A stretch of 64,000 bases of DNA from Macrostomum lignano. Lineage: Eukaryota. Of this stretch, positions 12,001 to 39,290 are shown piece after piece. The first letter of the stretch is position 1; each line of letters begins with the position of its first letter. The stretch is from contig NIVC01000646.1 in NCBI GenBank assembly GCA_002269645.1, positions 186,001 through 250,000 of the forward strand, read 5' to 3'. The notes below the pieces were generated by a model. The model made no database searches. It saw nothing but the letters and a program-made list of their open reading frames with translations, and had not been told where the DNA came from. The position numbers and the translations under genes were made by a program.

Positions 12001-12163
12001 GACCCACAGTCTGCAATCAGACAATGACCCACTGACTGCAATCAGACAATTACCCACAGTCTGCAATCAGACAATGACCCACAGACTGCAATCAGACAAT
12101 GACCCACAGACTGCAATCAGACAATGACCCACAGACTGCAATCAGACAATGAATGACGCACAG
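1..12163. repeat. 25-bp tandem satellite (CAG[T/A]CTGCAATCAGACAATGACCCA)n, runs off the left edge
   Basis: Directly visible 25-nt period with a T/A dimorphic site and AATG-insertion or deletion variants; no ORF in the track. Confidence 0.98.
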
Positions 12164-16369: not shown

Positions 16370-17062
16370 TGACTGCCAGTGACATTTGACTGCCAGTGAC
16401 ATTTTGACCGTCAGTGACATTTGACTGCCAGTGTCATTTGACTCCGATTGACATTTGACTGCCAGTGACATTTTGACCGTCAGTGACATTTGACTGCCAG
16501 TGACATTTGACTGCCAGTGAAATTTGACTGCCAGTGACAATTGACTGCCAGTGACAATTGACTGCCAGTGACAAGTTGACTGCCAGTGTCATTTGACTGC
16601 CAGTGACAAGTTGACTGCCAGTGACATTTGACTGCCAGTGACATTTTGACCGTCAGTGACATTTGACTGCCAGTGTCATTTGACTCCGAGTGACATTTGA
16701 TTGCCAGTGACATTTTGACCGTCAGTGACATTTGACTGCCAGTGACATTTGACTGCCAGTGAAATTTGACTGCCAGTGACAATTGACTGCCAGTGACAAT
16801 TGACTGCCAGTGACAAGTTGACTGCCAGTGTCATTTGACTGCCAGTGACAAGTTGACTGCCAGTGACATTTGACTGCCAGTGACAATTTGACTGCCAGTG
16901 ACAAGTTGACTGCCAGTGACATTTGACTGCCAGTGACAATTTGACTGCCAGTGACAATTTGACTGCCTGTGACATTTGACTGCCAGTGACATTTGACTGC
17001 CAGTGTCATTTGACTGCCAGTGACATTTGACTGCCAGTAACATTTAACTGCCAGTGACATTT
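16370..17062. repeat. 17/18-bp minisatellite (GACTGCCAGTGACATTT)n
   Basis: Visible tandem repeat; the short ORFs here are repeat translations. Confidence 0.95.
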
Positions 17063-17397
17063 TACCGCCATTTGCCGGACTGAATTGCATACAAGCAAAG
17101 CAAAACACTTTTTTTTCAACTATTCTTTTAACTTGGACACTATTCCAGGAATTGTTGATGCCAAACAACTCCTTAATTAATTTATGCAGCAACAGCAGCT
17201 GGGACAGGCAAGTAATGGTGAAACCGATCGATCCTCCCACCTAAGAATGGCGTGAAGTGTTGTGTTAAAAACTTATATTTAGCATACACTATAAATAAAT
17301 GGTTTACTGTTCGGCGCACAGCTGACATGGTACACCCACAGATTCTACAATGACTAGATGGGTCACTAAAAGCATGTATGCTTAGTAAAAACACTTT

Positions 17398-17744
17398 CTA
17401 CTTTCAGTTCAGTAGCAAAGAAGAATATATAAGCTATTTCTTTAGAAATAAAGGCAGCTGAAATAACTTTGATAAGTTCAGAAGCCCAAAGCTTGCAGGC
17501 GTAAACAACTTGCTAATTGGTTCAGCAGTAATGTACATTAGCCAGTCCACTGAAATGTACATGGCAGCTTTAGGCTGGAATTCCGAGAAAGGCAATAAAA
17601 TTTAGGCTGGGACGGGGCGGGGGTAGTGTGGAAAGGCGCGGCTGGAGGGTTTAAGCTTGGGGGGTAAGAGCCAATTGAGCCAATTTTAGGCTTTAAAAAT
17701 GTATTAAAATGCGTCAGTTTAACTTGCTACTGAACTGAAAGTAG
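17398..17744. mobile_element. MITE-like element with perfect 21-bp inverted repeats
   Basis: CTACTTTCAGTTCAGTAGCAA at 17398 and its exact reverse complement ending at 17744; imperfect inverted similarity continues outward; a related inverted copy lies at ~30760-31046. Confidence 0.7.
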
Positions 17745-18361
17745 CTTACAAGCAAATGTGCTGAGTGGCCCATCTAGCTATTCTAGTATCTGTGGTATAG
17801 CTACTCCATCAAACTAAGAATGATGCATTCACTGCAGAAACTACTGACAAAATTGAGTTCAGTAGTTGATATTCGCGCTGTCGCGAGTTGCAGAATTTTT
17901 TACATTAGCTTCTATGGCCACATAAGCGGTTAAAATGAGTGGCCCATCTTGTGTATATATGATCTTTGGGATAGCCTATTAAATTTCTATGCTCGTGCTC
18001 CTCAAATCAGATTTTAAATCAAATCTGTGATTTTACCGATCAGAAAAAATTAACAACGCAAGTAAGTTAGGCCAAAGCCTGGCAATAATTACAAACGTAA
18101 ATGGGTCTAGAAGAACTTACGAGTAAAAGATGCAACTTTAATAGAAATTATTGCTGGTGTATTAGAACCAGGGGAAATGCACAGCTTGGTAAAAAAAAAC
18201 TAAAAAATAGAACGGCTACCTGTACTATGAGCTAAACAAAGGCGACAGAGATTTTTTTTATTAATTTTGGTCTTTTCAAAAGATTTTTTGGCAAAGAGAA
18301 AAAATGCAAATCAGCAAACCGGAAGTTTCAGTTTATTATTGGCAAAACAAGCCAGACAAAC

Positions 18362-21332
18362 TCAATCCCAATCGTCAGCGGTGACCGGCTGTGTAGCCAC
18401 CGGGTTGGCACGGAACATCCTCTCGGCGAAGTCGCCCTCGTCGGGCTGCTCGCGGAACCGGTCTCTGGCGACGCTGCGCCTCATGTCGCGATTGCTGCCT
18501 ACAAAGCCGCCGAAGCCGCCGAAGCCGCCGCCGCAGGACTGGTCCGCGTAAACGTCGAGCCAGTCTGGCACGGACTGACCGGACTTCTCCAGATTCTGGC
18601 GCAACTTGAGGGCCAGGGCCGAGTCGCGTCCGTGGTCGTAAAACGAGATCGACTTTCCCGGGTTGCCGCAGCGACCTGTGCGACCAATGCGATGCACGTA
18701 CATGTCGAAGTCATTCGGCAGGTCCATGTTGATCACCAGCTCGATTCCGTTGATGTCAACGCCGCGAGCCGACACGTTTGTGGCGACCATAATCGGCAGC
18801 CTGCCACGCTGGAACGAGCGCAGGGAGATTTCTCTTTCGCGCTGCAGCCGGTCCCCGTGAATTGTGGTGCACGGGAAGCCGCCGTCAGATAGCATGAGGC
18901 CGACATAGTCGGCTCTGCGCTTTGACTCAACAAAGATCAGAATGCGATCGTCCGCCTGGCTGGGGTCGCTGCGCCAACGCTTGAGAATTTCAATCAGAGC
19001 GGCCTGCTTGTCGTCCTGCTGCACCTCGCGAACTTCCTGAGTCACGTCGGGATTGGCTGCGCCCACCTGACCCACAGTCAGGTACAAATAGTTCTGCAGG
19101 TACTGCTGAGCCAAAGCTTGAATCTGACTAGGGAACGTGGCCGAGAACATCACAATCTGCCTGTCAGAAGGCATCTGCTCCAGCGTCCAGGTCACCGAGT
19201 CCAGGAAGCCCCTGTCAAGCATCTGGTCGGCCTCGTCAAGCACAAGGAAGCGGGTCTTGTTCAGGCTGACAATGTTCCTCTCGGCAAAGTCCTTCAGCCG
19301 GCCGGGAGTGGCCACCAGAATGTGGCAGCCGTTAGCCAGTTCCGCGCGCAAGTAGTCGGTCTTGGGACCGCCGTACACGCGCTTGACGCGAATATTTGTG
19401 CCAGCCAGAAATCCCCTGGCAGAAGGAATGAGATGAAGAGCGATCGCTATAGCATCGCTTCAAATACAATCCCAAAATTTTGCCTATTAATAATTACGTA
19501 CTTTAAATTGTACATTTAGTACCGTTTATATCGATTGACCCTAAAATGCCGGTTTGACACTTACTCATTTACCCTGGCACTTGGTCTCTGTCAGGACGAA
19601 CAGAAAGTTGGAAAGCTTACCTAGCGAAATCATAAATTTGATTGCACAGCTCTCGGGTGGGAGTCAGTATAAGAGCGACCGGGTAGGTGGTGTACTGAGC
19701 AACAGTAGAATCGCTGGTGTCCAGCTCGGCGATCATCTTTGCCAGAGGTAGCAAAAAGGCCGCAGTCTTGCCCGAGCCCGTCTGGGCGCAGGCCATCACA
19801 TCTCTTCCTTTGAGGATGATGGGGATGCCGTACTTCTGCACCGGCGTGAGCTTGTTGTAGTTGTACTTGCGGAGAATGTTATCCAGCATCACGCTGGGCA
19901 GCCCGATGGCATCGAAGCTGGTCAGGTAGCCCGGCTTGTCGGTTCCCGACACCTCTACGTTGATTTGCTCGTACTTGTCGAAATTGATGCCCGTGTGGAC
20001 GGTCCGGCTGTAAATCTCGTCTAGCTGAGACTCTTCAGGCACGTGAGCAGTCGAGGCACCGGGGGCATCACCGGCGGCGACATTCGGGCAGTCGGCAGAG
20101 ATGTGGCCCGTCTCCTTACAGCGGAAGCAGGCACGTGCGTCCGCGTTTGGACATTCGCGAGCAAAATGGCCACTCTGGTTGCACTTGTAGCATACAGACC
20201 CGCCACCGCCGCCTCCAGCTTCAGCGTTTGGACACTCGCGGGCAAAATGGCCACTCTGGTTGCACTTGTAGCAGACAGAACCGCCACCGCCGCATCCAGC
20301 GCCATCATCAGCGGAGGCTCGAAAGCCACCTCGGCCTCCTCCGCGGCTGCCAAAGCCACCACCGCGGCTGCCGAAGCCACCTCCACCACCTTCAGCGCCA
20401 TCATCAGCGGAGGCGCCAAAGCCACCTCGGCCTCCTCCGCGGCTGCCAAAGCCACCACCGCGGCTGCCGAAGCCACCTCCACCACCATCAGCGCCATCAT
20501 CAACGGAGGCTCCGAAGCCACCTCGGCCTCCTCCGCGGCTGCCGAAGCCACCTCCGCCACCATCAGCGCCATCATCAACGGAGGCTCCGAAGCCACCTCG
20601 GCCTCCTCCGCGGCTGCCAAAGCCACCACCGCGGCTGCCGAAGCCACCTCCGCCACCATCAGCGCCATCATCAACGGAGGCTCCAAAGCCACCTCGGCCT
20701 CCTCCACGACTGCAGAAGCCACCACCACCGCGGTTGCTGAAGCCACCACCACCACCGCGGCTGCCGAAGCCACCTCCGCCACCTTCAGCGCCATCATCAG
20801 CATGGGCTCCGAAGCCGCCACGGCCTACGCCGCGGCTGCCGAAGCCACCTCCGCCACCATCATAAGCGGAGGCTCCGAAGCCGCCACGGCCTCCTCTACG
20901 AGTACGACTGCCGAATCCGCTATCACCGCGGCTGCTGAAGTCATCACCACCACCGCGGCTGCCGAAGCCACCTCCGCCACCTTCAGCGCCATCATCAGCA
21001 TGGGCTCCGAAGCCGCCACGGCCTACGCCGCGGCTGCCGAAGCCACCTCCGCCACCTTCAGCGCCATCATCAGCATGGGCTCCGAAGCCGCCACGGCCTA
21101 CGCCGCGGCTGCCGAAGCCACCTCCGCCACCTTCAGCGCCATCATCAGCGGAGGCTCCGAAGCCGCCACGGCCTCCTCCGCGGCTGCCAAAGCGACCACT
21201 GCGACCAGTCTCGCTTCTGCCAGTCTCACCTGCATTACGGTCGGCTTCAAGGGTCAGCTTTGAAAAATCATCAGTCAATGGCGCCCATTCGTCTTCGTTG
21301 GCGTCTTTAATAAGGAATCTCTTGCCAGCCAT
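18362..21332 (-). CDS. vasa: Vasa/DDX4 DEAD-box RNA helicase, copy A (921 aa, 2 exons, 3 CCHC knuckles)
   Basis: Exons 21332-19621 and 19415-18362 with a phase-2 GTAAG..CAG intron. RGG/FG repeats, motifs [38 protein letters not shown] and acidic C-terminal Trp (DDWD). Confidence 0.95.
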
Positions 21333-21851
21333 ACGCTGCTGTTTTAGATTGCCAGAAGCATAAGAGTTTTAATGCGATCGGTGACATCGGTGACAAACTC
21401 TATAAGTTTCTTTATAAATGGTGAACACTAAATGTACCCATGCGTTAATAGGTGTTAATAGAAAATCAGAGGGCGCCTTGGTTCTACATGTAGATTGGGG
21501 GCATCAATGATTACTGTACTCGTACCATAGACATTTTAGCTCAAGCTACACCCCGAGAGTGAGGGACGGGGTGTGGGGGCGAAGCCCTACCCACTACCAT
21601 AGACTAATTTGTTTTCTAGTAAATAAACTTCACAAATTTGCAGCCGGTTAATAGACCTTCGGCCATAGACAGCTCGTTTTATATCTATTTAACCTTAGAT
21701 TCTAAACACTTATTTTTTCAGCCAAATTGAGGATTGCAATTTGGCAGCAGTAGATTATGGTCTTGCCAAAAGGCAAGCGAGTTTATAAAAAGTAACCAAT
21801 TTGATAATTCTGATCTTAACTACATGGAAGTCGGTGTTTAAGCATGATTTC

Positions 21852-22073
21852 TATTGGGTAAAACAGAAATTTTTCGCAATTTGGAAAGTTAAGCCTACAG
21901 AAATTTCTAGAGGCTTCTAGAAGGTTTTGTGTGCAGAGGTATATAAATGCCTTAGACCGACGCAGAGCAACCCAAATTCAAGTTTGAGCTACAGTGCTAC
22001 AGTACTATTACATGTACAGTACTTAATTTCATAGAAAGCTTCACAAACCGCGAGAACTCTGTTTTACCCAATA
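21852..22073. mobile_element. Small putative MITE with 15-bp inverted repeats (possibly TA-flanked)
   Basis: TATTGGGTAAAACAG at 21852-21866 and CTGTTTTACCCAATA at 22059-22073. Confidence 0.45.
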
Positions 22074-22802
22074 CAAGAGCCGTTGCTGCTGGCATTCTTA
22101 TTTGTGCTGATGTCTATGGCCTAATTATCAACTTGTTTGCCTTTTTTCCGTCTGCCTGTTTATGAGCAACATCATATCTACTTGCTACCAAATGGTTTAG
22201 TTTCCCGTACTTTTACTTGTACTGCGTGTATGTATGTACGTATGAAATTGAATGAAGTTGTATAATAGATATCTTACTGAGCTTTCCGTACTCAGTGATA
22301 TTACTGAATTTATTATTTAATTTAGATTTCCCTACAAGCGTATAACGCAAAAAGTAATATTTAAACCACAGATACTAGACTAACTACGAGCAGAAACGTC
22401 AATCGTAAAAATGGCTTAACTACTCTTACTTCAGTAGCAAAACTAGCGTTTTGCCTTTGCAATAAGATTATAAAACCAGCATTTTGTTTTTTTAATAATA
22501 CAAGATATTTTAAAGCTGCAACATTGTCTCTGCCTTTTCAACAAGCAGATCCATTTGAGTAACGTATTTATCCTGTTTTTCTGTTATCTTGTTAAGCGAC
22601 ACCAGAAAGCCACAGATTCTAAATTATTAAAAAAATAATTTGACGGAGGAAAACTTAAAAGTAAAACCCCAAAACCAGTGCATGTGCAAAGCGAAAAAGA
22701 AAAAGGGGTGGCGTCCCAGCCCCAGTCAGGCCGATAACAGTTAACTGTTTAGGCTTTTCTCTTGCCCGCTTGCGCCTGACTTTGGCCTCACTCCTTACTA
22801 TT

Positions 22803-23053
22803 CTCATTGGCTGAGCTAGATTGGGCCTTCCCCAACCCTAGGCTCTGACTTTGACCTCTCTCCTTCTGCTCTCTCATTGGCTGAGCTAGATTGGGCCTGC
22901 CCCAACCCTAGGCTCTGACTTTGACCTCTCTCCTTCTGCTCTCTCATTGGCTGAGCTAGATTGGGCCTGCCCCAACCCTAGGCTCTGACTTTGACCTCTC
23001 TCCTTCTGCTCTCTCATTGGCTGAGCTATATTGGGCCTGCCCCATTGGCTGAG
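22803..23053. repeat. 70-bp tandem repeat (~3.5 copies) carrying CCAAT boxes
   Basis: Units start at 22803, 22873, 22943 and 23013; each contains CTCATTGGCT (AGCCAATGAG on the minus strand). Confidence 0.9.
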
Positions 23054-24624
23054 TTTCGTCCGTCTTGTGAAGTTGTGTTCACTTGTGCACATAAAGTTAA
23101 ATGCATGTTGTTATTTCTTAATTAACCCTATATTCTCAAGAGGCTGCAAACGCCGAGCAAGGAAAGGAAATTTTAGATGCCACATTAAATTTAAGTGATT
23201 CGGCATAGACAAACTACAGAAAAGGAGTCGACGCTCTACTTTTGACAGCTTTAATTGCGAGTGACATCTACTAGCTATGCTGATAGTTATTCTAGTATCT
23301 GTGATTAAAACCAAGGAGTGTTGAGAGCGTGTTGCATGCCAAGGCTCATTAACATTAAGCATTGTACGCTCGTATTTTCTGGGATGTTAATTGCTTTAAT
23401 TAACTTGTCCGAGTGAGTATGGACTCCTTTTGATGACCTTTCCCTATTTATCAGTAAGGTTTTTAAGGTTGGAAACAGCTATTTAGACCAACACATGGAC
23501 AAGTTTCCCTACATCAAATAAGAAAAAACTAAAGAAAAAGAGCAGCCAAATTTGAACAAAATAAAATAACCAAAGGATCGAAAGCCGATTTATTAAATGC
23601 ATCTTGCGAAGCGGACCGCGGAGCACAATGATAATTTCACAAAGGCGTTTCTTTAATCAACTGCAACACGAATGAATCACCAAATAAAAATAATTGGTGA
23701 ACGGGGCTTTATTGCTGTGGCCTTACAAATTGCAAGATATCGGAGGCAGCCTTATATTTTGAATCTAATTAAGGAAGCATATTTGCCCCTTGGTTCGATT
23801 CGATTTCATAGCACAGTAATACAGATAGCACAACAGTGTGCAGACAGCACAGCAATACAGTGAGCAGACAGCGTGTTATGCTACTAAAATGAGCAAACTG
23901 TACCATTGAATCGAATCATGAGACGCGGCTCAATGGGGGCGGGGTACTGGGTAAGCTAACCTGAAGTCTAGTAGTGATAAAGCTACTCTATAAACTAGGC
24001 TTTGAAACGATATTAAAAAGTAGAATATACAAATATAATAATAATAATAATAGTTAGTTTGGCTTAAACGGAAGTAGTATAAAGACGCGATATATAGATT
24101 AGCACCAGTTAGCACCAGGTGTGTATAAAAATGCAGCTTGTAAACAAATATTGCAGCATCGAGATTCCATCGCTGTCTCCTTCAGCTGTGAAAATCATGA
24201 GGACAGGAGCATCTGCAGCAAGCTAGCGCTAAACAGCAGAGTGCACAGGAGCTCAATCGATTCTATTACACATATAGGTTTATTTAGAACCACCGGAGGA
24301 CCCTGAGCACGCACTGCTCATTTTTGGAAAAAAAATTGGGCCATCGCAAATGTAATTAGGACTATTAAGAAATGACAGGGCCTATTTTTAAAAAAAAAGA
24401 TTGCAAAAATAATAAATTTGCCGAGACGATACAAAGCGTTTTAATAAAAATGTTTCAACGCAGATCGAGCACCAAGACAGCGAATTACCAGAGATCTGAC
24501 TCGCAGTGAATGGGAAAAGAAATAAACACGAAATGGCAACAAAAAGTCAAACAAGTACGAACACCGTGCAGTAAAAATTGTTTCTGCATGAAAACTTTCA
24601 GACACAGGTCGAGCAGCGCGGACC

Positions 24625-27600
24625 TCAATCCCAGGCCTCTTCTTCGGCTGCCGGAGCAGCGGCTGGGGCAGGACGGAACGCGCTCTCGGCGAAGTCGCCC
24701 TCGTCGGGCTGCTCGCGGAACCGATCTCTGGCGACGCCGCGCCTCATGTCGCGATTGCTGCCGCCTACGAATCCACCGACGCCACCCATGTCGCCGCCGC
24801 CGGACTGGTCCGCGTAAACGTCGAGCCAGTCGGGCACGGACTGACCGGACTTCTCCAGATTCTGGCGCAACAGGAGGGCCAGGGCCGAGTCGCGTCCGTG
24901 GTCGTAAAACGAGATCGACTTTCCCGGGTTGCCGCAGCGACCTGTGCGACCAATGCGGTGCACGTACATGTCGAATTCGCTCGGCAGGTCCATGTTGATC
25001 ACCAGCTCGATTCCGTTGATGTCGACGCCGCGAGCCGACACGTTTGTGGCGACCATGATTGGATTCTTGCCCCTCTTGAAATCCCTGATAGCAGTCTCGC
25101 GCTCGCGCTGCTGTCGGTCTCCGTGAATTGTGGTGCACGGCAGCTGCTTCTTCTGTGTCAGAGCCAGTCCGACAAAGTCCGCCTGTCGCTTTGTCTCCAC
25201 GAAGATGAGAATCCGGTCGCTCTTTCGAGCCGGATCCGAATGCCACTCATCGATGACTGACTCCAGAGCGGCCTGCTTGTCGTCCTGCTGCACCTCGCGA
25301 ACTTCCTGAGTCACGTCGGGATTGGCTGCGCCCACCTGACCCACAGTCAGGTACAAATAGTTCTGCAGGTACTGCTGAGCCAAAGCTTGAATCTGACTAG
25401 GGAACGTGGCCGAGAACATCACAATCTGCCTGTCAGAAGGCATCTGCTCCAGCGTCCAGGTCACCGAGTCCAGGAAGCCCCTGTCAAGCATCTGGTCGGC
25501 CTCGTCAAGCACAAGGAAGCGGGTCTTGTTCAGGCTGACAATGTTCCTCTCGGCAAAGTCCTTCAGCCGGCCGGGAGTGGCCACCAGAATGTGGCAGCCG
25601 TTGGCCAGTTCCGCGCGCAAGTAGTCGGTCTTGGGACCGCCGTACACGCGCTTGGCGTGAATATTTGTGCCAGCCAGAAATCCCCTGACAGAAAAAAAAG
25701 GGGTGAAAATGCTTACATAAAACACAACGCTATAGTTCCAATTTGAAAAAATATTTGCTATATAGGAAACTAACAAAACTTGTCTTTATAGTCGATATTA
25801 TTGAAACGAACCTTTTAAACATCATAAGGATAGACGTTTTCACGCATAATGGATTGACAGTAATGGACTTGAATATTAAGCTATTTTTTTTTCAGTTTTT
25901 CGAAACCATATCGGGTCGTCTAGCGGAAGAATAGCTACTTGATAAGGTCAGGAATCAGGGATGATGGGATCTTCAATTATAGAACAACATCTGGAGATGG
26001 GATATCTAATTATAAAACAATACCTGTATGATAAGAAGTTCCGACAAAGTGAAATTTTACGTGAAAGCGGCCCGTGCTGTTAAAATATTTGACGGAACTC
26101 TGAGAACAGTTGGTGAATCCATTTAAAGTTGACAGTCACAAGAGCTGCAGCAAATGGTGTGGGTGATGCATGGTAACGAGTGATTTAAATCACACAGCGT
26201 GATCAGGACTTTTTGGATTGTAAAAGAAGGAAAAGTGCAGTTTAGAAATTTGTCTGCCAGATACCCGATCGGGTGGCAATATAACACCAAAGACCTCAGA
26301 CGCGCTTTTCCTAGGCATGGATGCCGTGGCACTTACTTTCCAATGAAACGTTCACCGTCAGCGTTACCATAAAACAGCGTGCAGCAAGGTCCAGGCGATC
26401 CAGAGAAGGGAACTCAATGGACTGCGCTTGAGTGTCATTCCTCAGCCAAATCCTGAATTTCGCATCGCATCCGTGGTTCCAGCAGAGTAAGTGGACCTCA
26501 TGTTGAATAGGTGAATAGGTGTACCTTCATTGTCAGCTGGTCCAGCTCCGAGGGTGCAATCGTAAGTCTACGATTCTTTTAAGTCCACGAAGTCTAAGTC
26601 TTCGTGCAATCAAGTATCGACCATATACATGTATGGGGGCTGCTGCTTTGAGCTTTGACAAGACCAATACATAGGCTATGGTCAAATCCTTAAGTTTTAG
26701 AAAGTTTGAATGCTCCTAGCGCTGTGCAGAGAACTCCAAAACAACAAATATTCAGCAAATTACCTGACGGACTCGTAAATAATGGAAACGGAGTCTTTAC
26801 TCCATCGACGTAATCGTGCGTCGGAATTCCTGCTGCACAAGTACATAGCGTACGGAGACAATATCATGTTCCAGCGGGCTGCGTAAAAGTGGTACAACCG
26901 CTTTAAAGGAGAATCATCAACTGATGATGAACCTCGCTCTGGAAGACCGAAACAAACCAGGACGACAGAGAAAAAGAATTTGTTGGATTGACCATCGATG
27001 GACTTGCGAACTATCCAACATTTATCAACCAGCGTCTATCGGATTTACATGAAGGCCCTTGGAAACGGCAGGTAGGTACTGCAGGTGGGTTAGAGCCTGG
27101 CTCTCGGATCCTCACCCAACAGCCATTTGGTGTCCGAACCGGCGCCGATTTTCGCCAACGGAAAATTGATAGTAGCAATCTGGATTCTGGAAGTCCATTC
27201 GGTAGATATGATTCTCAGCGAGTACAGTACTCTAACAGTCTAACATTCTGCTTATGGATTTTGTGAACAAGCAGTGTTTCCCAGCTGAAACTTTATCTTG
27301 TACTTCTGTAAAAGACGCTGGATATGGAAAACAAATTGCTAATCGAGTCGTCGTGTCCTGAAGAGCATGCCTTATGCCCTGTCATGGATTCGAGCGTTGG
27401 ATGCAGCCGCATCATTGTATCTCGACTAAGCTGTTCAACAAAGTATGCTGCAAAGTATACTTCACTGCTTCTCGAGTCGCACTAGGTAGGGCAGTAGCTC
27501 CAACCAGCACGTTGGCACATTCTTCCAAGAATGTGTGCGTGGCCACCTTCAGCGCCATGTGAAGGGCTTCGAACTTCTTTGTCCGATTTGAGCTCTTGGA

Positions 27601-30215
27601 AAAGTAGGCGTGAATATCCTCACACAGAGATGCAGCAGAGGAAAAGTGCGTATCGATAGTATAGCGATCACCATTTGCCACAACATCAAGGGGTGCCGCC
27701 ACCAATATTAAAAAGGTGCTGCAGTTCAGGCTCCGATCGCAGACACTTGACTACTCTGGGATGCACTGCGCGCATAACGTTGCAGTTGTCCGAAAAGTCA
27801 AAATTCCACTTGTGGTATGACAGCGCATGACGTTTTTGAATGCGTGTAAAAATTTGCTGAAAGCAACACTGGATAGATCGAGCTGGAAAAGCTCAACAAT
27901 CACTGACACTAAGATGCTATATTATTTGAAATAAATTGTTATATGCAATACATACAGCCATCCTCTCTAAGAATATTTAGCTTCATTTTTTCAGTTAAAG
28001 GCCATCGATTATCGAATAAAATTGAACAAGCTATATAAACTCAATTCAACTTATTACCATTGTGTTTGAGCTATTAAAGATTAATCAATAGCAAAATTAT
28101 TTACCGACAAAGAACTTACCTAGCGAAATCATAAATTTGATTGCAGAGCTCTCGGGTGGGAGTCAGTATAAGAGCGACCGGGTAGGTGGTGTACTGAGCA
28201 ACAGTAGAATCGCTGGTGTCCAGCTCGGCGATCATCTTTGCCAGAGGTAGCAAAAAGGCCGCAGTCTTGCCCGAGCCCGTCTGGGCGCAGGCCATCAGAT
28301 CTCTTCCTTTGAGGATGATGGGGATGCCGTACTTCTGCACCGGCGTGAGCTTGTTGTAGTTGTACTTGCGGAGAATGTTATCCAGCATCACGCTGGGCAG
28401 CCCGATGGCATCGAAGCTGGTCAGGTAGCCCGGCTTGTCGGTTCCCGACACCTCTACGTTGATTTGCTCGTACTTGTCGAAATTGATGCCCGTGTGGACG
28501 GTCCGGCTGTAAATCTCGTCTAGCTGAGACTCTTCAGGCACGTGAGCAGTCGAGGCACCGGGGGCATCACCGGCGGCGACATTCGGGCAGTCGGCAGAGA
28601 TGTGGCCCGTCTCCTTACAGCGGAAGCAGGCACGTGCGTCCGCGTTTGGACATTCGCGAGCAAAATGGCCACTCTGGTTGCACTTGTAGCATACAGAACC
28701 GCCACCGCCGCCTCCAGCTTCAGCGTTTGGACACTCGCGGGCAAAATGGCCACTCTGGTTGCACTTGTAGCAGACAGAACCGCCACCGCCGCATCCAGCG
28801 CCATCATCAGCGGAGGCTCGAAAGCCACCTCGGCCTCCTCCGCGGCTGCCAAAGCCACCACCGCGGCTGCCGAAGCCACCTCCGCCACCTTCAGCGCCAT
28901 CATCAGCGGAGGCGCCAAAGCCACCTCGGCCTCCTCCGCGGCTGCCAAAGCCACCACCGCGGCTGCCGAAGCCACCTCCACCACCATCAGCGCCATCATC
29001 AACGGAGGCTCCGAAGCCACCTCGGCCTCCTCCGCGGCTGCCGAAGCCACCTCCGCCACCATCAGCGCCATCATCAACGGAGGCTCCAAAGCCACCTCGG
29101 CCTCCTCCGCGGCTGCCAAAGCCACCACCGCGGCTGCCGAAGCCACCTCCGCCACCTTCCGCGCCATCATCAGCGGAGGCTCCAAAGACACCTCGGCCTC
29201 CTCCGCGGCTGCCAAAGCCACCACCGCGGCTGCCGAAGCCACCTCCGCCACCATCCGCGCCATCATCAGCGGAGGCTCCAAAGCCACCTCGGCCTCCTCC
29301 GCGGCTGCCAAAGCCACCACCGCGGCTGCCGAAGCCACCTCCGCCACCTTCAGCGCCATCAACGGAGGCTCCGAAGCCACCTCGGCCTCCTCCACGGCCG
29401 AATCCGCCACCTCCACGACTACCAAATCCACCACTAGAACCTTGTCCTTCAGCATTCGGGCAGTCTCGTGCCATATGGCCACTTTCGTTGCACTTGAAGC
29501 AAGCAGAGGAGCCGCCACGGCCTCCACCACCGAAGCCGCCACGTCTTTCTTGAGAATCAGCATTCGGGCAGTCTCGTGCCATATGGCCACTTTCGTTGCA
29601 CTTGAAGCAAGCAGAGGAGCCGCCACGGCCTCCACCACCGAAGCCGCCACGTCTTTCTTGAGAATCAGCATTCGGGCAGTCTCGTGCCATATGGCCACTT
29701 TCGTTGCACTTGAAGCAAGCAGAGGAGCCGCCACGGCCTCCACCACCGAAGCCGCCACGTCTTTCTTGAGAATCAGCATTCGGGCAGTCTCGTGCCATAT
29801 GACCGCTCTCGTTGCACTTGAAGCAAGCAGAGGAGCCGCCACGGCCTCCACCTCGACCACCCCCGAATCCTCCACGGCTTCCGAAACCAACGCTATCATC
29901 GTTCTGAGTGTCTTCATTCCGGCTTCCAAAGCCACCGCGGCCGCCACCGAAACCACCACGACCTTCAGAACCTCCTCTGTCTCCATTTTGCGCACCGCTG
30001 CCAAAGCCACCGCGACCTCCACCAAACCCACTGCGGCCACTGCCGAAACCTCCTTCTCCATTAGCCGTGTCCCCACTTTGAGAGTTCGAAGCGCCACCGA
30101 AGCCGTTGCTGCCGTTAGAAGCTCCAAAGCTCATCTTCTTGAAGTCATTATTCAGATTTCCCGACGACCATTCGTCTTCAACGTCGCCTTTGGGCAAAAA
30201 TCCTCGGCCAGCCAT
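24625..30215 (-). CDS. vasa: Vasa/DDX4 DEAD-box RNA helicase, copy B (1051 aa, 2 exons, 7 CCHC knuckles)
   Basis: Exons 30215-28120 and 25684-24625 with a 2435-bp phase-2 intron at the same position as copy A; all helicase motifs intact; C-terminus EEEAWD. Confidence 0.93.
26340..27800 (-). pseudogene. Degenerate hAT-like transposase fragments inside the vasa B intron
   Basis: Minus-strand peptides in the expected order: FSDNCNVM (~27796-27773), [19 protein letters not shown] (~27630-27575) and [16 protein letters not shown] (~26418-26345), broken by stops and frameshifts. Recognised from memory of hAT motifs; no HMM was run. Confidence 0.5.
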
Positions 30216-30759
30216 TTTTAATGCAACTTTTGGTAATTTTGAAAACAGTACATAAACAAATATTTTATCATAGCAAAAGTCAATAATTGAGCAGCGAAAA
30301 TTTCATTTACGACAATTAGCCAAGTACATGTAATTCTCCTACAGACGTAAGGAAACAGATAGAAAGAAATGGAAAAATAATTGTCGATTAGTAACAAAAA
30401 AGACTCTATCTACACTTATTGCACAATTGTGGCACAGTCATAACTGTTTCACAACTGTTTCATAGCACAGTAATATGCTGATTAGCATAATTGTGTCATA
30501 GCTGTGCTAACTGTGCCAAAAGGACGGTCGAAAACAATAATAAATGATCTAATTGGCACGTTTGGCAGAATTTTAGATTCTGCTAGGACAATGGTTTCCC
30601 ACCTGGACTATGGCCTAAAAGTTTGACTGGTGAGCAAAGACATAATCTTAGTCCATTTTCCTCCCCTTTGGATCTTGATTCCATTCTTATTATTGTTTGT
30701 GCGGACGATAGCACAGCCTTTAGCAAAAATGCTTTAAACAGAAGCATTTTAATGTATGT

Positions 30760-31046
30760 TTAAAGCCATGGCTCATTTATTGGCTCTTACCCCCAGCTTA
30801 AACCCTCCAACCGCGCCTTTCCACACTACCCCCCGCCCCTCCCCAATTTTTATTGCCTTTCTCGGAATTCCAGCCTAAGGCTGCCAAGTACATTTCAGTG
30901 GCTGGCTAATGTACATTACTGCTGAACCAATTAGCAAGTTTTTTACGCCTGCAAGCTTGGCTTTTGAACTTAAAGTCATTTCAGCTGCATTTTATTTCTA
31001 AAAAAATAGCCTATGTATTTTCTTTTGCTACTGAACTGAAATTAGC
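30760..31046 (-). mobile_element. Inverted copy of the 17398-17744 MITE-like element
   Basis: Reverse complement aligns by eye with ~17400-17700, including TTGCTACTGAACTGAAA at ~31025-31041. Confidence 0.75.
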
Positions 31047-32623
31047 TGTTTTGCTAAGTATATATGCCTGAATGGCCCATCTTGCCATTTTAGGATCTGG
31101 GGGCATAATAGGGAATCTTAACACTAATTTTACTGAACATCTTGGCTGCAAAGCTGATTTTAGTTTAATGAAATTTACACAAGAAGAACATGACAGTAAA
31201 ATTAGCAAGGCAATCTTAATTAACTTTATATTTTACTTAGTATACAACATAGAAAAGATCTTGATTGATTCTTTGCATTGTGAACCACAATGCAAATATG
31301 TTATCGCGTCGAAATCTTAGGATTAGATGCAGATTTAATCAGCAAATACACATCAATAGAGTCAGGCTAGTTACTTCGCAAGGGGTCTTGGGCACTGTCG
31401 CAAATCAAGAAGGCTAGCAGTTATGCCGATTCTGCTGACCTCTGAGCACGCACAAAAAATAATAAAGGTTCGTTCTGAGCGTCAAAAAGCAAAAATGACA
31501 AAAAAACAATAATAACGTGTACTAAAAACCCTAATAAAAACAGAAAAAACTACCCGTAACCGAAGCGAAATTATGAAAGACCTGAGTTTTTGCTTTGCGT
31601 AGCAACTAATAAGATTTCATCAAAAAATTTAGGATAGATTTAATCATTTAAGATAATGTTTGTCACTAAAAGCACATAACTAGTGAATGAAACCGATCAA
31701 TTAGAGTTCAGTATAGCATGCACATATAACATAGTGAAAATAATAAAACCAATAATAAAATAAGCAATGTAGGTGTAGCGTATAATGAATATAGTTTAGC
31801 GTTTGACCAATTAGTGGCAAAAAGCTAAAACATTTGGTGGCCAAACTTTTAGTGACTAAAAAAATCTACAGAAATTATCTGTACCTTAGAGCCTCAAATG
31901 TTTTGTTTTTCTTATTCTTTCGTTTCTCTCTTTGAAGATGTATCCCACCGTCTATGCGCTTCTAATCAATAAATCAAGTCGAAGGTTCAGTAGGTTTCTC
32001 TCGATTTTTAACCCTCAACATGGATGTTTATTTCTAATTCCTGATGGTTGCAGTTTCGAATAGACAATAAACATGCAATGTTTTTAAAGCAATTCAGTGA
32101 AATAAAAAGGGGGCTACTTATCTATATTGGTGCACTTCGATCCGGAAGTCTCTAGATGGTCTCTTCGTTTGATTAGCATATTGGAGTTTCCTTGTCAGTC
32201 TTTTGAGTCTAGGTGGTGTTGGATAATAACTCTGGATGGAGGGCGGAGCAGGAGTAGAGGAGCAGCGGGAGGGGCAAAAGGACGGGAGCTTCATTCTCAC
32301 TAAACGCTAGTATATACATGATTTCTATAACGCATTTTATAGGTGGTCGCTTCACGCAATAGGTTCTTTACTGCCGCAAAAGCATGTGCTGTACTCTCCA
32401 GATAAAAAACCGTCCGAAGTTCGCATTAGACTAAAAAATAGCGTTGGGCATATGTTTAAATTAAGATCACTATATGCAGCAGTAGATGTCTTTAATCTAC
32501 GATTCCAAATCTTGTCAAGCCAAGTCGGGGGAAGAAATCTGAATCAAACAATCGAATTAACCAAAAATACTACCAATTACTGATGTGCAGTAGCGGGATT
32601 ATACAAAAAAACAGATTTAATCA

Positions 32624-35600
32624 TTAATCCCATGGATCGTCGTTGGATAGCTGAGCAGCGGCTGGGGCAGGACGGAACGCGCTCTCGGCGAAGTCGCCCT
32701 CGTCGGGCTGCTCGCGGAACCGGTCTCTGGCGACGCCGCGCCTCATGTCGCGATTGCTGCCGCCTACAAAGCCACCGACGCCGCCCATGTCGCCGCCGCA
32801 GGACTGGTCCGCGTAAACGTCGAGCCAGTCTGGCACGGACTGACCGGACTTCTCCAGATTCTGGCGCAACAGAAGGGCCAGGGCCGAGTCGCGTCCGTGG
32901 TCGTAAAACGAGATCGACTTTCCCGGGTTGCCGCAGCGACCTGTGCGACCAATGCGGTGCACGTACATTTGAAAGTCGCTCGGCAGGTCCATGTTGATCA
33001 CCAGCTCGATTCCGTTGATGTCAACGCCGCGAGCCGACACGTTTGTGGCGACCATAACCGGCTTCTTGCCCCTCTTGAAATCCCTGATAGCAGTCTCGCG
33101 CTCGCTTTGGAGCCGGTCTCCGTGAATTGTGGTACAGAGCAGCTGCTTCTTCTGCGTCAGAGCCAGTCCGACAAAGTCCGCCTGTCGCTTTGTCTCCACG
33201 AAGATGAGAATCCGGTCGCTCTTTCGAGCCGGATCCGAATGCCACTCGTCGATGACTGACTCCAGAGCGGCCTGCTTGTCGTCCTGCTGCACCTCGCGAA
33301 CTTCCTGAGTCACGTCGGGATTGGCTGCGCCCACCTGACCCACAGTCAGGTACAAATAGTTCTGCAGGTACTGCTGAGCCAGAGCTTGAATCTGATTAGG
33401 GAACGTGGCCGAGAACATCACAATCTGCCTGTCAGAAGGCATCTGCTCCAGCGTCCAGGTCACCGAGTCCAGGAAGCCCCTGTCAAGCATCTGGTCGGCC
33501 TCGTCAAGCACAAGGAAGCGGGTCTTGCTCAGACTGACAATGTTCCTCTCGGCGAAGTCCTTCAGCCGGCCGGGAGTGGCCACCAGAATGTGGCAGCCAT
33601 TGGCCAGCTCATTACGCAGGTAGTCCGTCTTGGGTCCGCCATAAATTCGTTGAATTCGAACGCCCGTTCCAGCTAGAAAGCCTCTGTAAGTGATGTGAGA
33701 ACAAATGCTTGCTTTTATCTAGCAGAAACTAAAAACAAGATTAAAAGTAACACTAGACTAATGGAATATATTTGATTCAAGAATAGCAATGAACTTACAG
33801 GCCGAATTCAAACGTCTGGTTGCAGAGTTCTCTGGTCGGTACCAAGACAAGAGCAACCGGATAAGTAGTATAACCTCCACCAGTGCTGATATCGCCTATC
33901 TCAGTGATTAACTTTGCCATAGGCAGTATAAAAGCCGCCGTCTTCCCGGACCCTGTCTGTGCACAGGCCATTAAATCGCGACCTTTAAGTACAATCGGAA
34001 TAGCGTATCTCTGCACGGGTGTTAGCTTTGTATACTTGAACTTCTTAGAAATATTGTCCATTAGGACAGGGGACAAGCCAATTTCATCAAATGATTGCAA
34101 GTAGCCGGGTCGGTCAACACCTGAAACTTCGACATCAATTTTTTCGTAGTTGTCAAAGTTAATGCCGGCATGGACAGTTTGGTTGTATATCTCATCAAGT
34201 TCCGACGTCTCCGGGATATGAGCAGCTGATGGACCATCTCTGCTAGTGCGTTGAGTGTTCGGACATTCTGCGGCAAAATGGCCAGACTCACCGCAGTTAA
34301 AACAAGCAATCGCGCCAGAATTAGTGCATTCTCGCGCAAAGTGTCCTGGTTGCTGACACCTGAAGCAGACGCTATCACCATTGTTATTTGCATTATCCCG
34401 ACGATAAAAGTCTCTACTTTCGAATCCACCTCCGAAGCCTCGATTGCTCCTTTCGAACTCTTCACCACTTTGATCTTCTCTACTTAACGATCTAAAGCCG
34501 TCCATGTCTCTCGATCCCCGACCACGACCGCCGAAGCCTCCTCGGGATCGTTCGTTTCTGCCGCCATCAAAGTCGCTTTCTTGATTGCCACCAAAACCAC
34601 CTCTTTGACCAAGGCCTCGGCTACCACCAAAGCCTCCTCGAGGTTCTGCGTTTCTGTCAAATTGGAAATCGCTCTCTTGATTACCACTGAACCCACCTCT
34701 TTGGTCACGGTCACTGCCGAAGCCACCACGGCCTCTACCGCTATCAAAGCCTCTACGAGCTTCAAAGCCACCACGGGCTCGACCGCTACCGAAGCCACCT
34801 CGAGGCTCTTCATTTCCGCCGTAATCGAAGTCGCTCTCTTGATTGCCACCGAACCCACCTCTTTGACTACGGTCACTGCCGAAGCCACCACGGCCTCGAC
34901 CGCTACCAAAGCCGCCTCGGGGTTCTTCGTTTCTGTCGTTACCAAAGCCTCCACGGGCTCCAAAGCCACCACGGCCCCGACCGCCATCAAAGCCTCCATG
35001 GGGTTCTTCGTTTCTGTCGTTACCAAAGCCTCCACGGGCTCCAAAGCCTCCACGGCCCCGACCGCCATCAAAGCCTCCACGGGCTCCAAAGCCTCCACGG
35101 GCTCGACCGCTACCAAAGCCGCCTCGGGGTTCTTCGTTTCTGTCGCTATCAAAGCCTCCACGGGCTCCAAAGCCTCCACGGGCTCGACCGCTACCAAAGC
35201 CGCCTCGGGGTTCTTCGTTTCTGTCGCTATCAAAGCCTCCACGGGCTCCAAAGCCACCACGGCCCCGACCGCCATCAAAGCCTCCACGAGGTTCTTCGTT
35301 TCTGTCGCTACCAAAGCCTCCACGGGCTCCAAAGCTACCACGGCCCCGACCGCCATCAAAGCCTTCACGAGGTTCTTCGTTTCTGTCGCTACCAAAGCCT
35401 CCACGGGCTCCAAAGCCACCACGGCCCCGACCGCCATCAAAGCCTCCACGAGGTTCTTCGTTTCTGTCGCTACCAAAGCCTCCACGGGCTCCAAAGCCAC
35501 CACGGCCCCGACCGCTACCAAAGCCACCTCGGGACTCTTCATTTCCGCCGTAATCGAAGTAGCTCGCTTGATTGCCACTAAGATGTCCTTGGTTTCTGTG

Positions 35601-35768
35601 GCTACTGGATCCTTGAACACGATTACCGCCAACATCGATATTTAAATGTTCACTACTCCAGTCGCTAGTGCCTTGCTGATTGATATCATCTCCTGATGCT
35701 GGTTCAGCAGCCCATTCGTCATTAAAATCAGCGACTGCTGGCTGGATAGGCCGGCCTCGACCAGCCAT
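32624..35768 (-). CDS. vasa: Vasa/DDX4 DEAD-box RNA helicase, copy C (1009 aa, 2 exons, 2 CCHC knuckles)
   Basis: Exons 35768-33799 and 33683-32624 with a 115-bp phase-2 intron at the homologous position. Start MAGRG chosen by homology to copies A and B; C-terminus DDPWD. Confidence 0.93.
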
Positions 35769-36918
35769 TAGAACAGCATGCATGTAATTAAAATATTAAA
35801 AAGTTGTTTTTATCGCCGATTTTGTAATAGAAAAATAAAAATAATGTTCACTTAAAAGATGTTTGGTTCACACAATTTAGCTAGCCCTATTTAGGTCTTA
35901 GGGCTGGGACAGGTATTTTCACAGTGTTTAATCTTGGATCGTTAATCTAAAAATCCGATAAGCCACTACGTGACATTCATGTACGCAGCCCGGTGTAACG
36001 CTTTAGCCTAAACTTAAAACGAGGATCGCATTATTAGTACCGCATAAAATAAAAACAGTTTGACGTATTTGCTTCGACCGAAAAATATTTTTTCAAGTTT
36101 TATTTTTCCCAAAAAATAGACAGGCCGATTTTTCGCCCAGTGTATAGAAATATGCATTTAATAAATATATTTTAATTGGTTGTTAAACTTATGGAACACA
36201 TTGTGCATAACGAGAAGAGAACGAGAGAAACAAAAGCAAGCACGCTACATTAAACGAATTAAACTTAAGATATTATACCGGGGAATTAAAAAGAAACACG
36301 GGTCAATGTGCAAAGACACAAAGAGACACGGACAAGTACGCGAGAAAATAAAGCACAACAAAGACCGACAAAGTCGTGCAGGTTTGAATGAATTTTATCA
36401 TTGACTTACCAGTATATTAGAGAGAATAAAAAACATTTCAGACATTGAAAATTATTTGAAGGGTCAAGAAGCAGAGTTAGGACAAAAAGAATCGTAGCAA
36501 GTTCCTAGCAAGTGTCAATGAAACAGCTCAATGCGCAAGGTTAGACTAACATTCGAGGTCACTACTGTAGCGTTATTATTAAGCGAAGAAGTTATCAGAG
36601 AGAAGAATCCACGGTGCTGTTGCGGCTTCATTAGCAATAAATGAGTGTAAAAAGCACAATGGTTTTTGCTGCTACGTCTTCAGTACATTAATAAAGATGA
36701 GCCGCTACTACACCCAGCTACAAATAGGAACAAGTTTGAATATAAATTATTATTTTTATAGCGCATAATTAATTGCGTTAAAACTGATTAATAAGTCAAG
36801 TATGGCCAATTACTAGCTCCATTTCAACCAAAGTAAGGGAACAAAATATTAAATTGTCCCAGCTAGTCTCCTTGCTCAGGCCGCAAACAGGCGTCGCTAT
36901 CAAGCAGTTGCCGCAATC

Positions 36919-37787
36919 TTACAAATCTTCATCGTCGTCAGGCAGGGGAGCCTCGGCGGCAATTTGAATCTCCTGCTCATATCGTTGAGCGAGGCTCGGG
37001 TCCATGGCCAGTTCGGGAGGCGCCAGGGCCGGCATCTCAACGAACTCCAGGTGCGCGTCGCCGACAAGCTTCCTAGCTAGCCAAAGGAACGGCTTCTCAA
37101 AATTGTAGTTGGACTTCGCGCTAATATCGTAGTATTGCAAGTTCTTTTTCCTGTGAAAAGTGATGGTCTTCGCTTTCACCTTGCGATCCTTAATATCCAC
37201 CTAAGTATGGCAAAGTTGGGGTTTTCAAAGATATTATATTGAGCTAGATGTTGTAAGTGTAATTTCATATATAAAGGTTTATGGCGGCCGGCTAAAGATA
37301 CCTTATTTCCAACCAGAACGATTGGGATGTTTTCGCACACTCGCACCAGATCTCTGTGCCAATTAGGCACGTTCTTGTAAGTGACGCGAGACGTCACATC
37401 GAACATGATGATAGCGCACTGGCCCTGGATGTAATAGCCATCGCGAAGTCCGCCGAATTTCTCCTGGCCAGCTGGAAACAAGCAAACAAGCATTCATTTC
37501 AGCACTAACCGTTGCGCAACACAATTAAACATAGAACCGTTTGCATTTTAGCACATCTTACTGAAAAACTCATCTTAAATAACAGCCTTACCTGTATCCC
37601 AAACGTTGAAGCGCATCTTTCCACGAGTAGTATGAAAGTCCAACGGGTGAACTTCAACGCCAAGAGTGGCTACGTACTTCTTTTCGAATTCGCCAGTCAG
37701 GTGACGCTTAACAAAGGTAGTCTTGCCAACGCCGCCATCGCCAACGAGGACCAGTTTGAATTGGGCGATCACGTTTGTGTTGTCCAT
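36919..37787 (-). CDS. Ran: Ran GTPase (215 aa, 3 exons)
   Basis: Exons 37787-37592, 37471-37302 and 37200-36919; [20 protein letters not shown] and SAK motifs; acidic tail DDDEDL. Confidence 0.97.
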
Positions 37788-38900
37788 GGCAAGGGAGAGT
37801 GCAACTTCTGCAAAATTTGAGACGCAAAAGCTAATACAGCTCTGAGAAAATTCGGTCTAATGTAGGATAACTTCGGTAACAAATGTAGGATATTTTAATC
37901 CCATGAAAGCCAATTATAGCGACCATAGAGCGACGAAAGAATGTGTACTCCAAGCTTTTCATGCGAATTTTATTACCATAGTTGGGCTGGGCTCGAACCC
38001 AATGGGTTAAAGCACATCCTTACAATTACATAGAAAACCTTATGTGCCTATATTAGCTTTCCATGATAATTAAGCTGAAAACACAGACGACTGACAGTTG
38101 TGTGCTTATTCAGGTCAATTTTTTCAATTTCATTCTTAAATTCAATTGCTGATAAGTCAAACTATAGCTAGAGGTTGTATAGGATTGTTTGTTGGAATTA
38201 CAGAAATGGGACTGGCATCCCAATTTGCCAGGATTCCGGAATTTTAGGAACAGGATTGAACCACTGTCATACCTCTAACTGCAAATAACACTTGAACTTC
38301 ATATTCAAAACCTTATACAAATTAATATTTATAAAACAAACTATAGGATCTTAGCAACTATCAGACTATGATTTCTAATTTTAAATGAACATTATATCCT
38401 TATAATTCTATTTGAAAAATTCTAATAAAATAAACATTTAAGTCTATTTTTCAACAGTTCAAAATTAGCAAAATACATATAGATGTATAATCATTAAACT
38501 TCCCTAGGCTTTGGTATATGCCAGCAATGTTTCATCATAATCTAATTTACTAGTTTGTATATTTAATCTATAAGTCTGTAAATATCAAACAAAAATTTAG
38601 ATTACTAACCTATCAGATAATCCTTATATCTTAGAATACAAGCCTAATTAGTAGGTCGAATTATACTTTTAACTTTTTATTATACATATTAGCTTAAAAT
38701 AAATACCTTACTAAATGAAACGACAAACTAATTTTGATTAATAAATCAAATACATAACATAATGTATACATTTATATGCTCACTCTAATGGGTCAACACT
38801 TTACCCCATACATTATACCATTTTTATTAATTTTCAACAACTTTGCAAGTCATATGTACTAAACATATTAGGGATGCTTTATAATGCAAATTGAGATTGA

Positions 38901-39290
38901 GGGGGCTGTAGCCCAGCGGTAGCGCAGCTGCTCTGGTGTGCCAGCAACCTAGGCTTGATTCCAAGTGCAGTCACATTAATTTGGGGCTGAATTAGAATCT
39001 CGGCTTAGCTTTTCTCATGCAATTAACAGTCTTGAGAGCCAACCCCCAAGGCGCAGTGAAGTGTACATGCCTAACGATAATATAAAGTTAGGGCCCCTGT
39101 ACACTCCTGTGAGTGTGTGCCTGCGTACATATCCACGCGCTTGTATGCCTGCTCAGGGGAGTCAGCGGAATGGGCAGTAATGCCTCTTGCCAGTTGTGTG
39201 CCTATGTTGCTTAAAGTGCGCCAGGGTGCAAACAACCCCCTGCCTCTAATAATAAAATAATGGGGACTAGATTGGTAGGCTTTTGGTATT
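38901..39290 (+). mobile_element. tRNA-derived SINE flanked by a 53-bp direct repeat
   Basis: tRNA-like head GGGGCTGTAGCCCAGCGG with degenerate B-box GGCTTGATTCC; body resembles 59700-59920; direct repeats at 38842-38894 and 39367-39419 (1 mismatch). Confidence 0.7.

Follow-up and report, generated by a model that had tools for sequence, protein, structure and literature searches.

The 64,000-nucleotide (nt) stretch of Macrostomum lignano DNA analysed here (the window; identical to a section of contig NIVC01000646.1 of assembly GCA_002269645.1, Mlig_3_7) carries on its minus strand three vasa-like genes, which are transcribed in the order C, B, A and whose reading frames are all intact. Positions given below are those of the window. 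Each gene has two exons and a single phase-2 intron, the codon position of which is identical in A, B and C. Our comparison of these sequences indicates that the middle copy, B, is probably an old third paralogue of the tandem array C-B-A that has been patchily homogenised by recurrent ectopic (interparalogue) gene conversion.

In the product of B, Pfam recognised a DEAD domain (RecA1, residues 624–799, 4.1e-45), a Helicase_C domain (RecA2, residues 851–950, 9.2e-29) and zf-CCHC in seven stretches (4.6e-49), and RGG repeats are visible in its N-terminal part. C has 2 CCHC knuckles, A has 3 and B has 7. When B was used to search the PDB, Bombyx BmVLG (4d25, E 5.6e-123) and Drosophila Vasa (2db3, 3.2e-111) outranked DDX3X, and the top named database homologues of the array genes were DDX4/vasa. 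By search ranking, the three genes are therefore putative Vasa/DDX4 helicases, nearer to Vasa/DDX4 than to PL10/DDX3. The closest database proteins, including the macvasa protein A9J0E2, are all from M. lignano: above ~55% identity, the protein database search returned only five sequences, none of them from another Macrostomum, and the clusters were single-member.

Directly upstream of C are exons of a Ran-type small GTPase (36919–37493, minus strand; Pfam Ras 2.8e-18). A second copy of the region was found on contig NIVC01004514.1 (hereafter L001), where Ran, C2, B2 and A2 are collinear with the window and 88–98% identical to it; the Ran-type GTPase that neighbours C2 (L001 positions 2024–2908) anchors the collinearity of both loci. 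Where the two loci are compared, the genes of the window are called A1, B1 and C1.

The original prediction, made from the window alone, had described B as a mosaic of A and C, and this was borne out at both loci. When the B-informative sites in a codon alignment of the helicase core were counted, 182 A-type and 2 C-type sites lay to the left of the best breakpoint, and 14 A-type and 108 C-type sites to its right. The corresponding MaxChi value (243.6) was not equalled in any of 2000 permutations (p ≤ 0.0005), and in L001 the ratios were 184:2 and 15:110. The trees were also incongruent among segments, so this check did not count against the mosaic. The last A-type site of B is at 25383 and the first C-type site at 25263; the 120 nt between them are identical in A, B and C, and the switch, which falls between the two RecA domains, cannot be placed more finely. 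The switch had been predicted after the motif QAAL, at about 25262. This is where the C-type sequence begins (25263, the codon after QAAL, residue E840), but it marks only the 3' edge of the interval in which the change could have occurred. From this codon onwards, B differs from C at 14 of 207 sites and from A at 86 of 204.

A scan of 40-mer identity along B, together with the site counts, allowed the mosaic to be mapped (Table 1). B had been thought to be A-like from the RGG repeats and knuckles through the first RecA domain. This holds for 29400–28120, at ~100% identity (the final 428 nt of exon 1 contain 2 differences), and for 25684–25600, but the region 25600–25300 is alike in all three genes. 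The motifs SLNKT/SLSKT and FPSQ/FPNQ, which had been proposed as paralogue markers, are not diagnostic, as they sit in the tract homogenised among the three genes; in L001, A2 carries SLSKT/FPGP, B2 SLNKT/FPNQ and C2 SLNKT/FPGP. Likewise, the C type does not continue to the end of B: C-like patches do occur downstream of segment IV, but they are interspersed with stretches in which A, B and C are all alike (25060–24830 and 24760–24710), and the C-likeness stops at 24654, about 27 nt before the stop codon. In segment IV itself, A differs from B or C at 83–88 of 204 sites (synonymous divergence, dS, >1.8) and is only 53–78% identical to B in the 40-mer scan, over 25300–25070. The identity between A and B stops within ~5 nt of the splice donor and resumes within ~10 nt of the acceptor. 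Not far into exon 2, B1 and B2 have in common two codons (His-Ala) that are specific to B, with gene-specific sites at 25658 and 25655. In total, B has at least five homology junctions (~29400, 28120, ~25700, 25383–25263 and 24654), to which small patches in the 40-mer scan add more.

One such patch, at ~25140–25100 within the C-type block, contains six sites in ~40 nt that match A and not C, in both B1 and B2; a micro-conversion from A, or the persistence of A-type ancestral sequence, could account for it. As for the remaining parts of B, the claim that its N-terminus, intron and flanks are unrelated to those of A was correct for the intron, the flanks and the 3' end, which are unrelated to those of C as well. 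The N-terminus, however, shows a weak protein similarity to that of A (MAG..FL.K...EDEW) and is more A-like than C-like, and the private knuckle units of B are 75–80% identical to the knuckles of A and 57–65% identical to those of C.

Table 1. Genes of the vasa array and segments of the middle copy B (window positions, in the direction of transcription except for the tandem repeat)
Feature	Position	Strand	Description
Gene C (upstream copy, gamma type)	35783..32624	-	Exon 1 35783-33799, intron 115 nt, exon 2 33683-32624; 1014 aa, 2 CCHC knuckles
Gene B (middle copy, mosaic)	30215..24625	-	Exon 1 30215-28120, intron 28119-25685 (2435 nt), exon 2 25684-24625; 1051 aa
Gene A (downstream copy, alpha type, to which the published macvasa cDNA belongs)	21332..18362	-	Exon 1 21332-19621, intron 205 nt, exon 2 19415-18362; 921 aa
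B's own N-terminal region	30215..29420	-	40-mer identity 0.5-0.8 to A, 0.5-0.7 to C
108-nt tandem repeat inside B's own N-terminal region	29449-29852	-	3.7 copies; encodes four knuckles
A-type block of B: RGG repeats, three knuckles, N-terminal half of RecA1	29400..28120	-	40-mers 0.95-1.00 identical to A
B intron	28119..25685	-	No relation to the A and C introns
A-type 5' end of B exon 2	25684..25600	-	A1-B1 3/85 differences, B1-C1 29/85
Tract III: motifs Ib to III, including DEAD and SAT motifs; A, B and C nearly identical	25599..25264	-	0-15 differences/336 nt among six copies, dS 0-0.08
Segment IV: C-type module of B, start of RecA2, with motif IV and alpha2 helix	25263..25057	-	B1-C1 14/207, B2-C2 9/207 differences
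Rest of RecA2 and C-terminal extension	25056..24654	-	Mostly alike in all three; C-type patches of B at 24820-24770 and 24700-24654
Final 8 codons (PAAEEEAWD) and stop, private to B	24653..24625	-	3' untranslated region and downstream flank also private to B

The paralogues combine saturated divergence with near-identity. Over the exon 1 core and the start of exon 2 (segments I and II), A and C differ at 35% of the nucleotides, with a proportion of synonymous differences (pS) of 0.86, and C and B likewise differ at 35%; exon 1 of C has no blastn match to A or B. In segment IV (207 nt), 42% of the nucleotides differ between A and C (dS >2). Beside these regions, tract III (336 nt) and tracts V–VII (372 nt) show a dS of only 0–0.15 among all six copies, and the variants of tract III are shuffled among paralogues and loci. 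Because purifying selection on the protein cannot erase synonymous differences, we interpret these shared tracts as conversion tracts. Their positions are those of the best-conserved helicase motifs, and the similarity remaining there would allow conversion to go on. Runs of concordant sites were significant for the three pairs A-B, B-C and A-C (p ≤ 0.0002).

The grouping of the six copies changes along the gene. When the final 428 nt of exon 1 are compared, 2 sites separate A1 from B1 and none separates A2 from B2, whereas A1-A2 and B1-B2 each show 10 differences. Over the last 600 nt of this exon, 14 sites sort by locus (A1=B1 versus A2=B2) and none by gene, and in neighbour-joining trees of exon 1, A1 groups with B1 (84%) and A2 with B2 (99%). 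This grouping by locus suggests that conversion between A and B continued after the loci split. Other variants are also shared only within a locus, namely GNTGK, common to B2 and C2 alone (alignment nt 1185–1190, equivalent to B1 24927–24922), and FPGP, common to A2 and C2. Segment IV and the tail, on the other hand, group by gene. The B-C dS in these parts is 0.08–0.20, and since this exceeds the divergence between loci, the transfer between B and C would be older than the locus split. For the similarity between A and B, dS is 0.016, and we take the two values as the apparent ages of the similarities.

M. lignano is a recent hidden polyploid, and most regions are represented in its assembly by as many as three paralogous copies, with ~2% single-nucleotide polymorphism (SNP) divergence (PMC10733133, PMC5704211); the likeliest identity of L001 is therefore a further subgenome copy or a haplovariant. 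B2 has all the hallmarks of B: a distinct N-terminus that carries CFKCNESGH knuckles, an exon 1 of the A type, an intron that is likewise long and unrelated, a C-type start of RecA2 and the private C-terminal tip. The intron of B2 is 3704 nt long, compared with 2435 nt in B1, and is ~92% conserved with indels; L001 also carries SNPs and indels of its own. Since the mosaic is common to B1 and B2, it must be older than the split of the loci. Between the loci, the spacers align at 90–94% where dS is ~0.09.

Some further differences between the two loci were observed. The N-terminal CFKCNESGH units number four in B1 and three in B2, and the RGG repeat numbers differ too. In B2 (L001 ~10900–11100) and A2 (~20600–20700), the reading frames shift inside the RGG repeats, and the deposited annotation omits these stretches; the shifts could be long-read indel errors or real disruptions. 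Divergence between the loci, compared over 31942–39807 and 18278–31944, is uneven: ~2–3% over Ran, C and the region downstream of A, and 6–10% over A, B and the spacer between them. A single difference in 425 sites of the exon 1 core separates C1 from C2, compared with 10 in 428 for A1-A2 and likewise for B1-B2.

The arrangement of B had been compared with that of anti-Lepore haemoglobin genes, in which beta-5'/delta-3' hybrids (for example Hb Miyada or P-Nilotic) are located between delta and beta. On anti-Lepore chromosomes there is a single junction, the intergenic spacer is duplicated and the homology extends into introns and flanks. A misaligned A x C crossover accordingly predicts the order C-(A5'/C3')-A with a single junction, two paralogous spacer copies and homology running outward into the promoter, the intron and the 3' flank. 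B is indeed an A5'/C3' hybrid lying between C and A, but the other expectations failed. Its outer homology edges are inside the coding sequence, at ~29400 and 24654. A blastn comparison (word size 7) of the C-B spacer (30216–32623) with the B-A spacer (21333–24624) yielded only one marginal 39-nt match. The B intron gave no blastn match to the introns of A and C, and local alignments against shuffled sequences mostly had p values of 0.1–0.7. Crossover-duplicated flanks would be obvious at the dS values of A-B or B-C, because the non-coding DNA of the two loci still aligns at 90–94% at a dS of ~0.09. Without homology in flanks, intron and spacers, the present similarities cannot directly reflect a crossover, and conversion is needed. 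The original prediction had allowed for later turnover or patchwise conversion, rightly so, and conversion now appears as the main process. The anti-Lepore reading of B is thus partly supported by the sequence.

The non-coding parts of the array were also inspected on their own account. A C-like ancestry of the B intron, the ends of which (GTAAGTTC... and AAGCATTT) look C-like by eye, was considered and dropped: the few nominal values were divided evenly between A and C and concern the splice and polypyrimidine tract only. The open reading frames (ORFs) of this intron have no Pfam match, and no Rfam family or tRNA was detected in 12000–40000, so that nothing there accounts for its length. The only substantial non-coding similarity around the array is a dispersed, inverted repeat of ~390 nt (84% identity), present in the C-B spacer (31103–30734) and downstream of A (17335–17722).

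The flanks and the promoter region of B, its N-terminal knuckle repeats, its long intron and its C-terminal tip are all private to it. These observations can be brought together if conversion has been confined to exonic stretches that are still similar enough to pair, stopping at the unrelated introns and termini. Under such a scheme, A and B would exchange the 3' 1.3 kb of exon 1, recently and still today; a transfer older than the split of the loci would have given B and C a common RecA2 start and, for the most part, a common tail; and all three genes would be homogenised over the catalytic motifs. Segment IV is too divergent between A and C to belong to the shared tracts, but it is flanked by identical tracts in which conversion can start and end. 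A tract anchored in tracts III and V could therefore carry these 207 divergent nucleotides across, which would explain the C-type RecA2 start of B.

Other histories of B have to be weighed against gene conversion, and an ancient unequal crossover is the one that deserves most attention. In it, an exchange between A and C made the A5'/C3' hybrid, whose flanks, intron and termini later diverged or were replaced, while conversion with the matching parent kept each half similar. The geometry is right, conversion would be expected to tie each half to the parent that it resembles, and both the N-terminal protein similarity and the identities of the private knuckles are higher to A. An A-like N-terminus, however, is equally predicted if B is an old duplicate of A with a 3' half converted by C; no residue of a duplicated spacer or of a parental intron remains, so that the crossover is an extra assumption beyond the reach of the present data; and all of the present similarity requires later conversion anyway. 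We regard this origin as possible but doubtful, although the data are compatible with it as well as with an old A duplicate later converted by C and cannot decide between the two. A recent single crossover, of which the present B would be the direct and little-altered product with a breakpoint at ~25300, is very unlikely. The sharp switch lies within a tract identical in A and C (tract III), an ideal crossover site, but the number of junctions and the lack of non-coding homology do not agree with the single junction and outward homology that such an event predicts, and the mosaic is older than the split of the loci.

Homology that ends at exon borders might also suggest that conversion was templated by spliced mRNA or cDNA, and the limits of A-B identity close to donor and acceptor fit this idea. 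We nevertheless consider it highly improbable, because the recent A-B tract of exon 1 ends at the splice junction without crossing it (differences separating B1=B2 from A1=A2 appear 26–29 nt into exon 2); moreover, unrelated introns would halt a DNA-templated tract at the same borders. The chance that the switch is an artefact of joined A-type and C-type reads seems almost negligible. Repeats are abundant in this neopolyploid genome, which has up to three near-identical subgenome copies, assembly errors are acknowledged for Mlig_3_7 (PMC10733133), and the switch sits in a tract identical among the paralogues. The original prediction had itself named a chimera as a result that would overturn the mosaic, but the separate contig NIVC01004514.1 carries, in collinear order, the same mosaic, N-terminus, long intron and C-terminal tip together with SNPs and indels of its own, which removes this explanation, and the unique intron and flanks of B bind both halves to one locus.

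Several points weigh against recurrent conversion of an old paralogue as the history of B. The comparison comprises M. lignano copies only and is unrooted, so that it gives neither a direction nor a date for any transfer. The A5'/C3' order fits the anti-Lepore geometry and would be a one-in-two coincidence under pure conversion. Both loci come from one PacBio-based assembly, and polishing could in principle exaggerate the A-B identity within a contig. The GC content at third codon positions (GC3) is 0.46–0.48 in the partnerless 5' half of C and 0.68–0.83 in the tracts with a conversion partner, a pattern that is compatible with GC-biased conversion but not decisive, as the partnerless segment IV of A also reaches 0.71, which weakens the argument.

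The C-type module of B covers a region of possible functional interest. In Drosophila Vasa, the alpha2 helix of RecA2 binds the eLOTUS domains of Oskar, TDRD5 and TDRD7. Binding is via F504 and F508 (PMC5458760). According to the alignment with 2db3, segment IV (B 25263–25057, A 18994–18794, C 33262–33056) includes the equivalent of this helix, but unlike Drosophila Vasa, A has Y/M and B and C have F/A at the corresponding positions. At the position of F508, for which a strictly conserved aromatic residue has been described from insects to humans, A thus has Met and B and C have Ala. By analogy, B may pair the front end of A with C's version of a known partner-binding surface. One could go further and view the array not as a mere product of conversion but as a modular set kept by selection, with B as a retained, domain-swapped Vasa. 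Conversion would then keep the catalytic motifs identical, while selection would maintain three N-terminal disordered modules (2, 3 and 7 knuckles) and two alternative RecA2 entry modules. We consider this unlikely; if true, it would mean that B joins the RNA- and granule-targeting front of A to the partner-binding surface of C, a combination conserved in both subgenome copies.

These findings bear on the use of macvasa, which serves in M. lignano as a standard marker of the germline, of neoblasts and of the piRNA pathway. Germline and stem-cell expression has been reported for macvasa, which is of the A type, and primers for its quantitative PCR (qPCR) have been published (PMC4604429). The macvasa of Pfister et al. 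(2008; UniProt A9J0E2) belongs to the same species and family as the array genes, and its cDNA protein is A-type over the diagnostic segments. The literature searched, however, speaks of one gene with 'two isoforms' (PMC4604429), whereas the genome has three tandem vasa paralogues per locus at no fewer than two diverged loci, with identical stretches; in the literature searched, we found no description of the paralogues B and C or of conversion at the locus. The qPCR primers fall in tract III, at 19139–19209 in A, 25408–25478 in B and 33407–33477 in C (L001 6427–6446). The reverse primer has no mismatches in A, B and C, and the forward primer matches perfectly only in C2. Because identical stretches are shared, probes, double-stranded RNA, qPCR primers and antibodies directed to the helicase core are expected to hit all the paralogues, and the reported 'two isoforms' and mild RNA interference phenotype of macvasa may partly reflect them. 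Annotation and orthology calls in this neopolyploid are affected as well, as segment histories differ within one gene. The A9J0E2 protein itself is A-type but has, where exon 2 starts, the His-Ala that among the six genomic copies is specific to B and, in tract III, a Met and an Asp specific to C2, as well as several private substitutions; its cDNA would represent either a third homeologous A copy or a PCR chimera.

Outside the array, a 25-nt minisatellite (consensus CAGTCTGCAATCAGACAATGACCCA; ~480 copies, 93% match) occupies 1–12152, with strongly skewed strands (GC skew about -0.3, AT skew about +0.44). More minisatellites, with periods of 23/29, 17 and 70 nt, are located at 14205–15869, 16370–17070, 22776–23044, 48.0–49.6 kb, 56.1–59.7 kb and 61.1–63.9 kb, and in the window's right half a number of long ORFs, such as the 918-aa 'DAKLDSI' ORF at 61147–63903, consist of nothing but translated tandem repeats. 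The plus strand carries an intronless ORF for a rhodopsin-family G-protein-coupled receptor at 54799–56055 (7tm_1, 1.3e-07), and the minus strand, at 50528–51271, an ORF with a SUEL-type lectin domain (2.9e-15) after a His/Arg/Pro-rich repeat.

Compared with BmVLG (4d25) and Drosophila Vasa (2db3), the array genes share the DEAD and Helicase_C domains, the N-terminal RGG repeats, the CCHC knuckles and an acidic C-terminus with a final Trp-Asp; unlike in these proteins, the number of knuckles varies within a single M. lignano array. As in the anti-Lepore haemoglobin genes, B unites the 5' part of the downstream paralogue with the 3' part of the upstream one and lies between both parents, but it differs from them in its multiple junctions and in having an intron, termini and spacers of its own. 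The array also resembles cases of concerted evolution by ectopic conversion such as human HBG1/HBG2, RHD/RHCE and the red/green opsins. There, too, near-identical tracts that include synonymous sites lie within diverged sequence, a gene is closer to its paralogue in the same genome copy than to its counterpart in the other, different segments give incongruent trees and tracts end where homology is lost. In contrast to those pairs, where non-reciprocal transfer is concerned, the array provides an inference from sequence rather than a direct observation; it also has three paralogues, two of them synonymous-saturated outside the tracts, and B exchanges with a different neighbour in each half. Conversion and concerted evolution are known, ordinary processes, and the array represents no new mechanism but a well-documented, clean case of them that is limited to conserved exon stretches.

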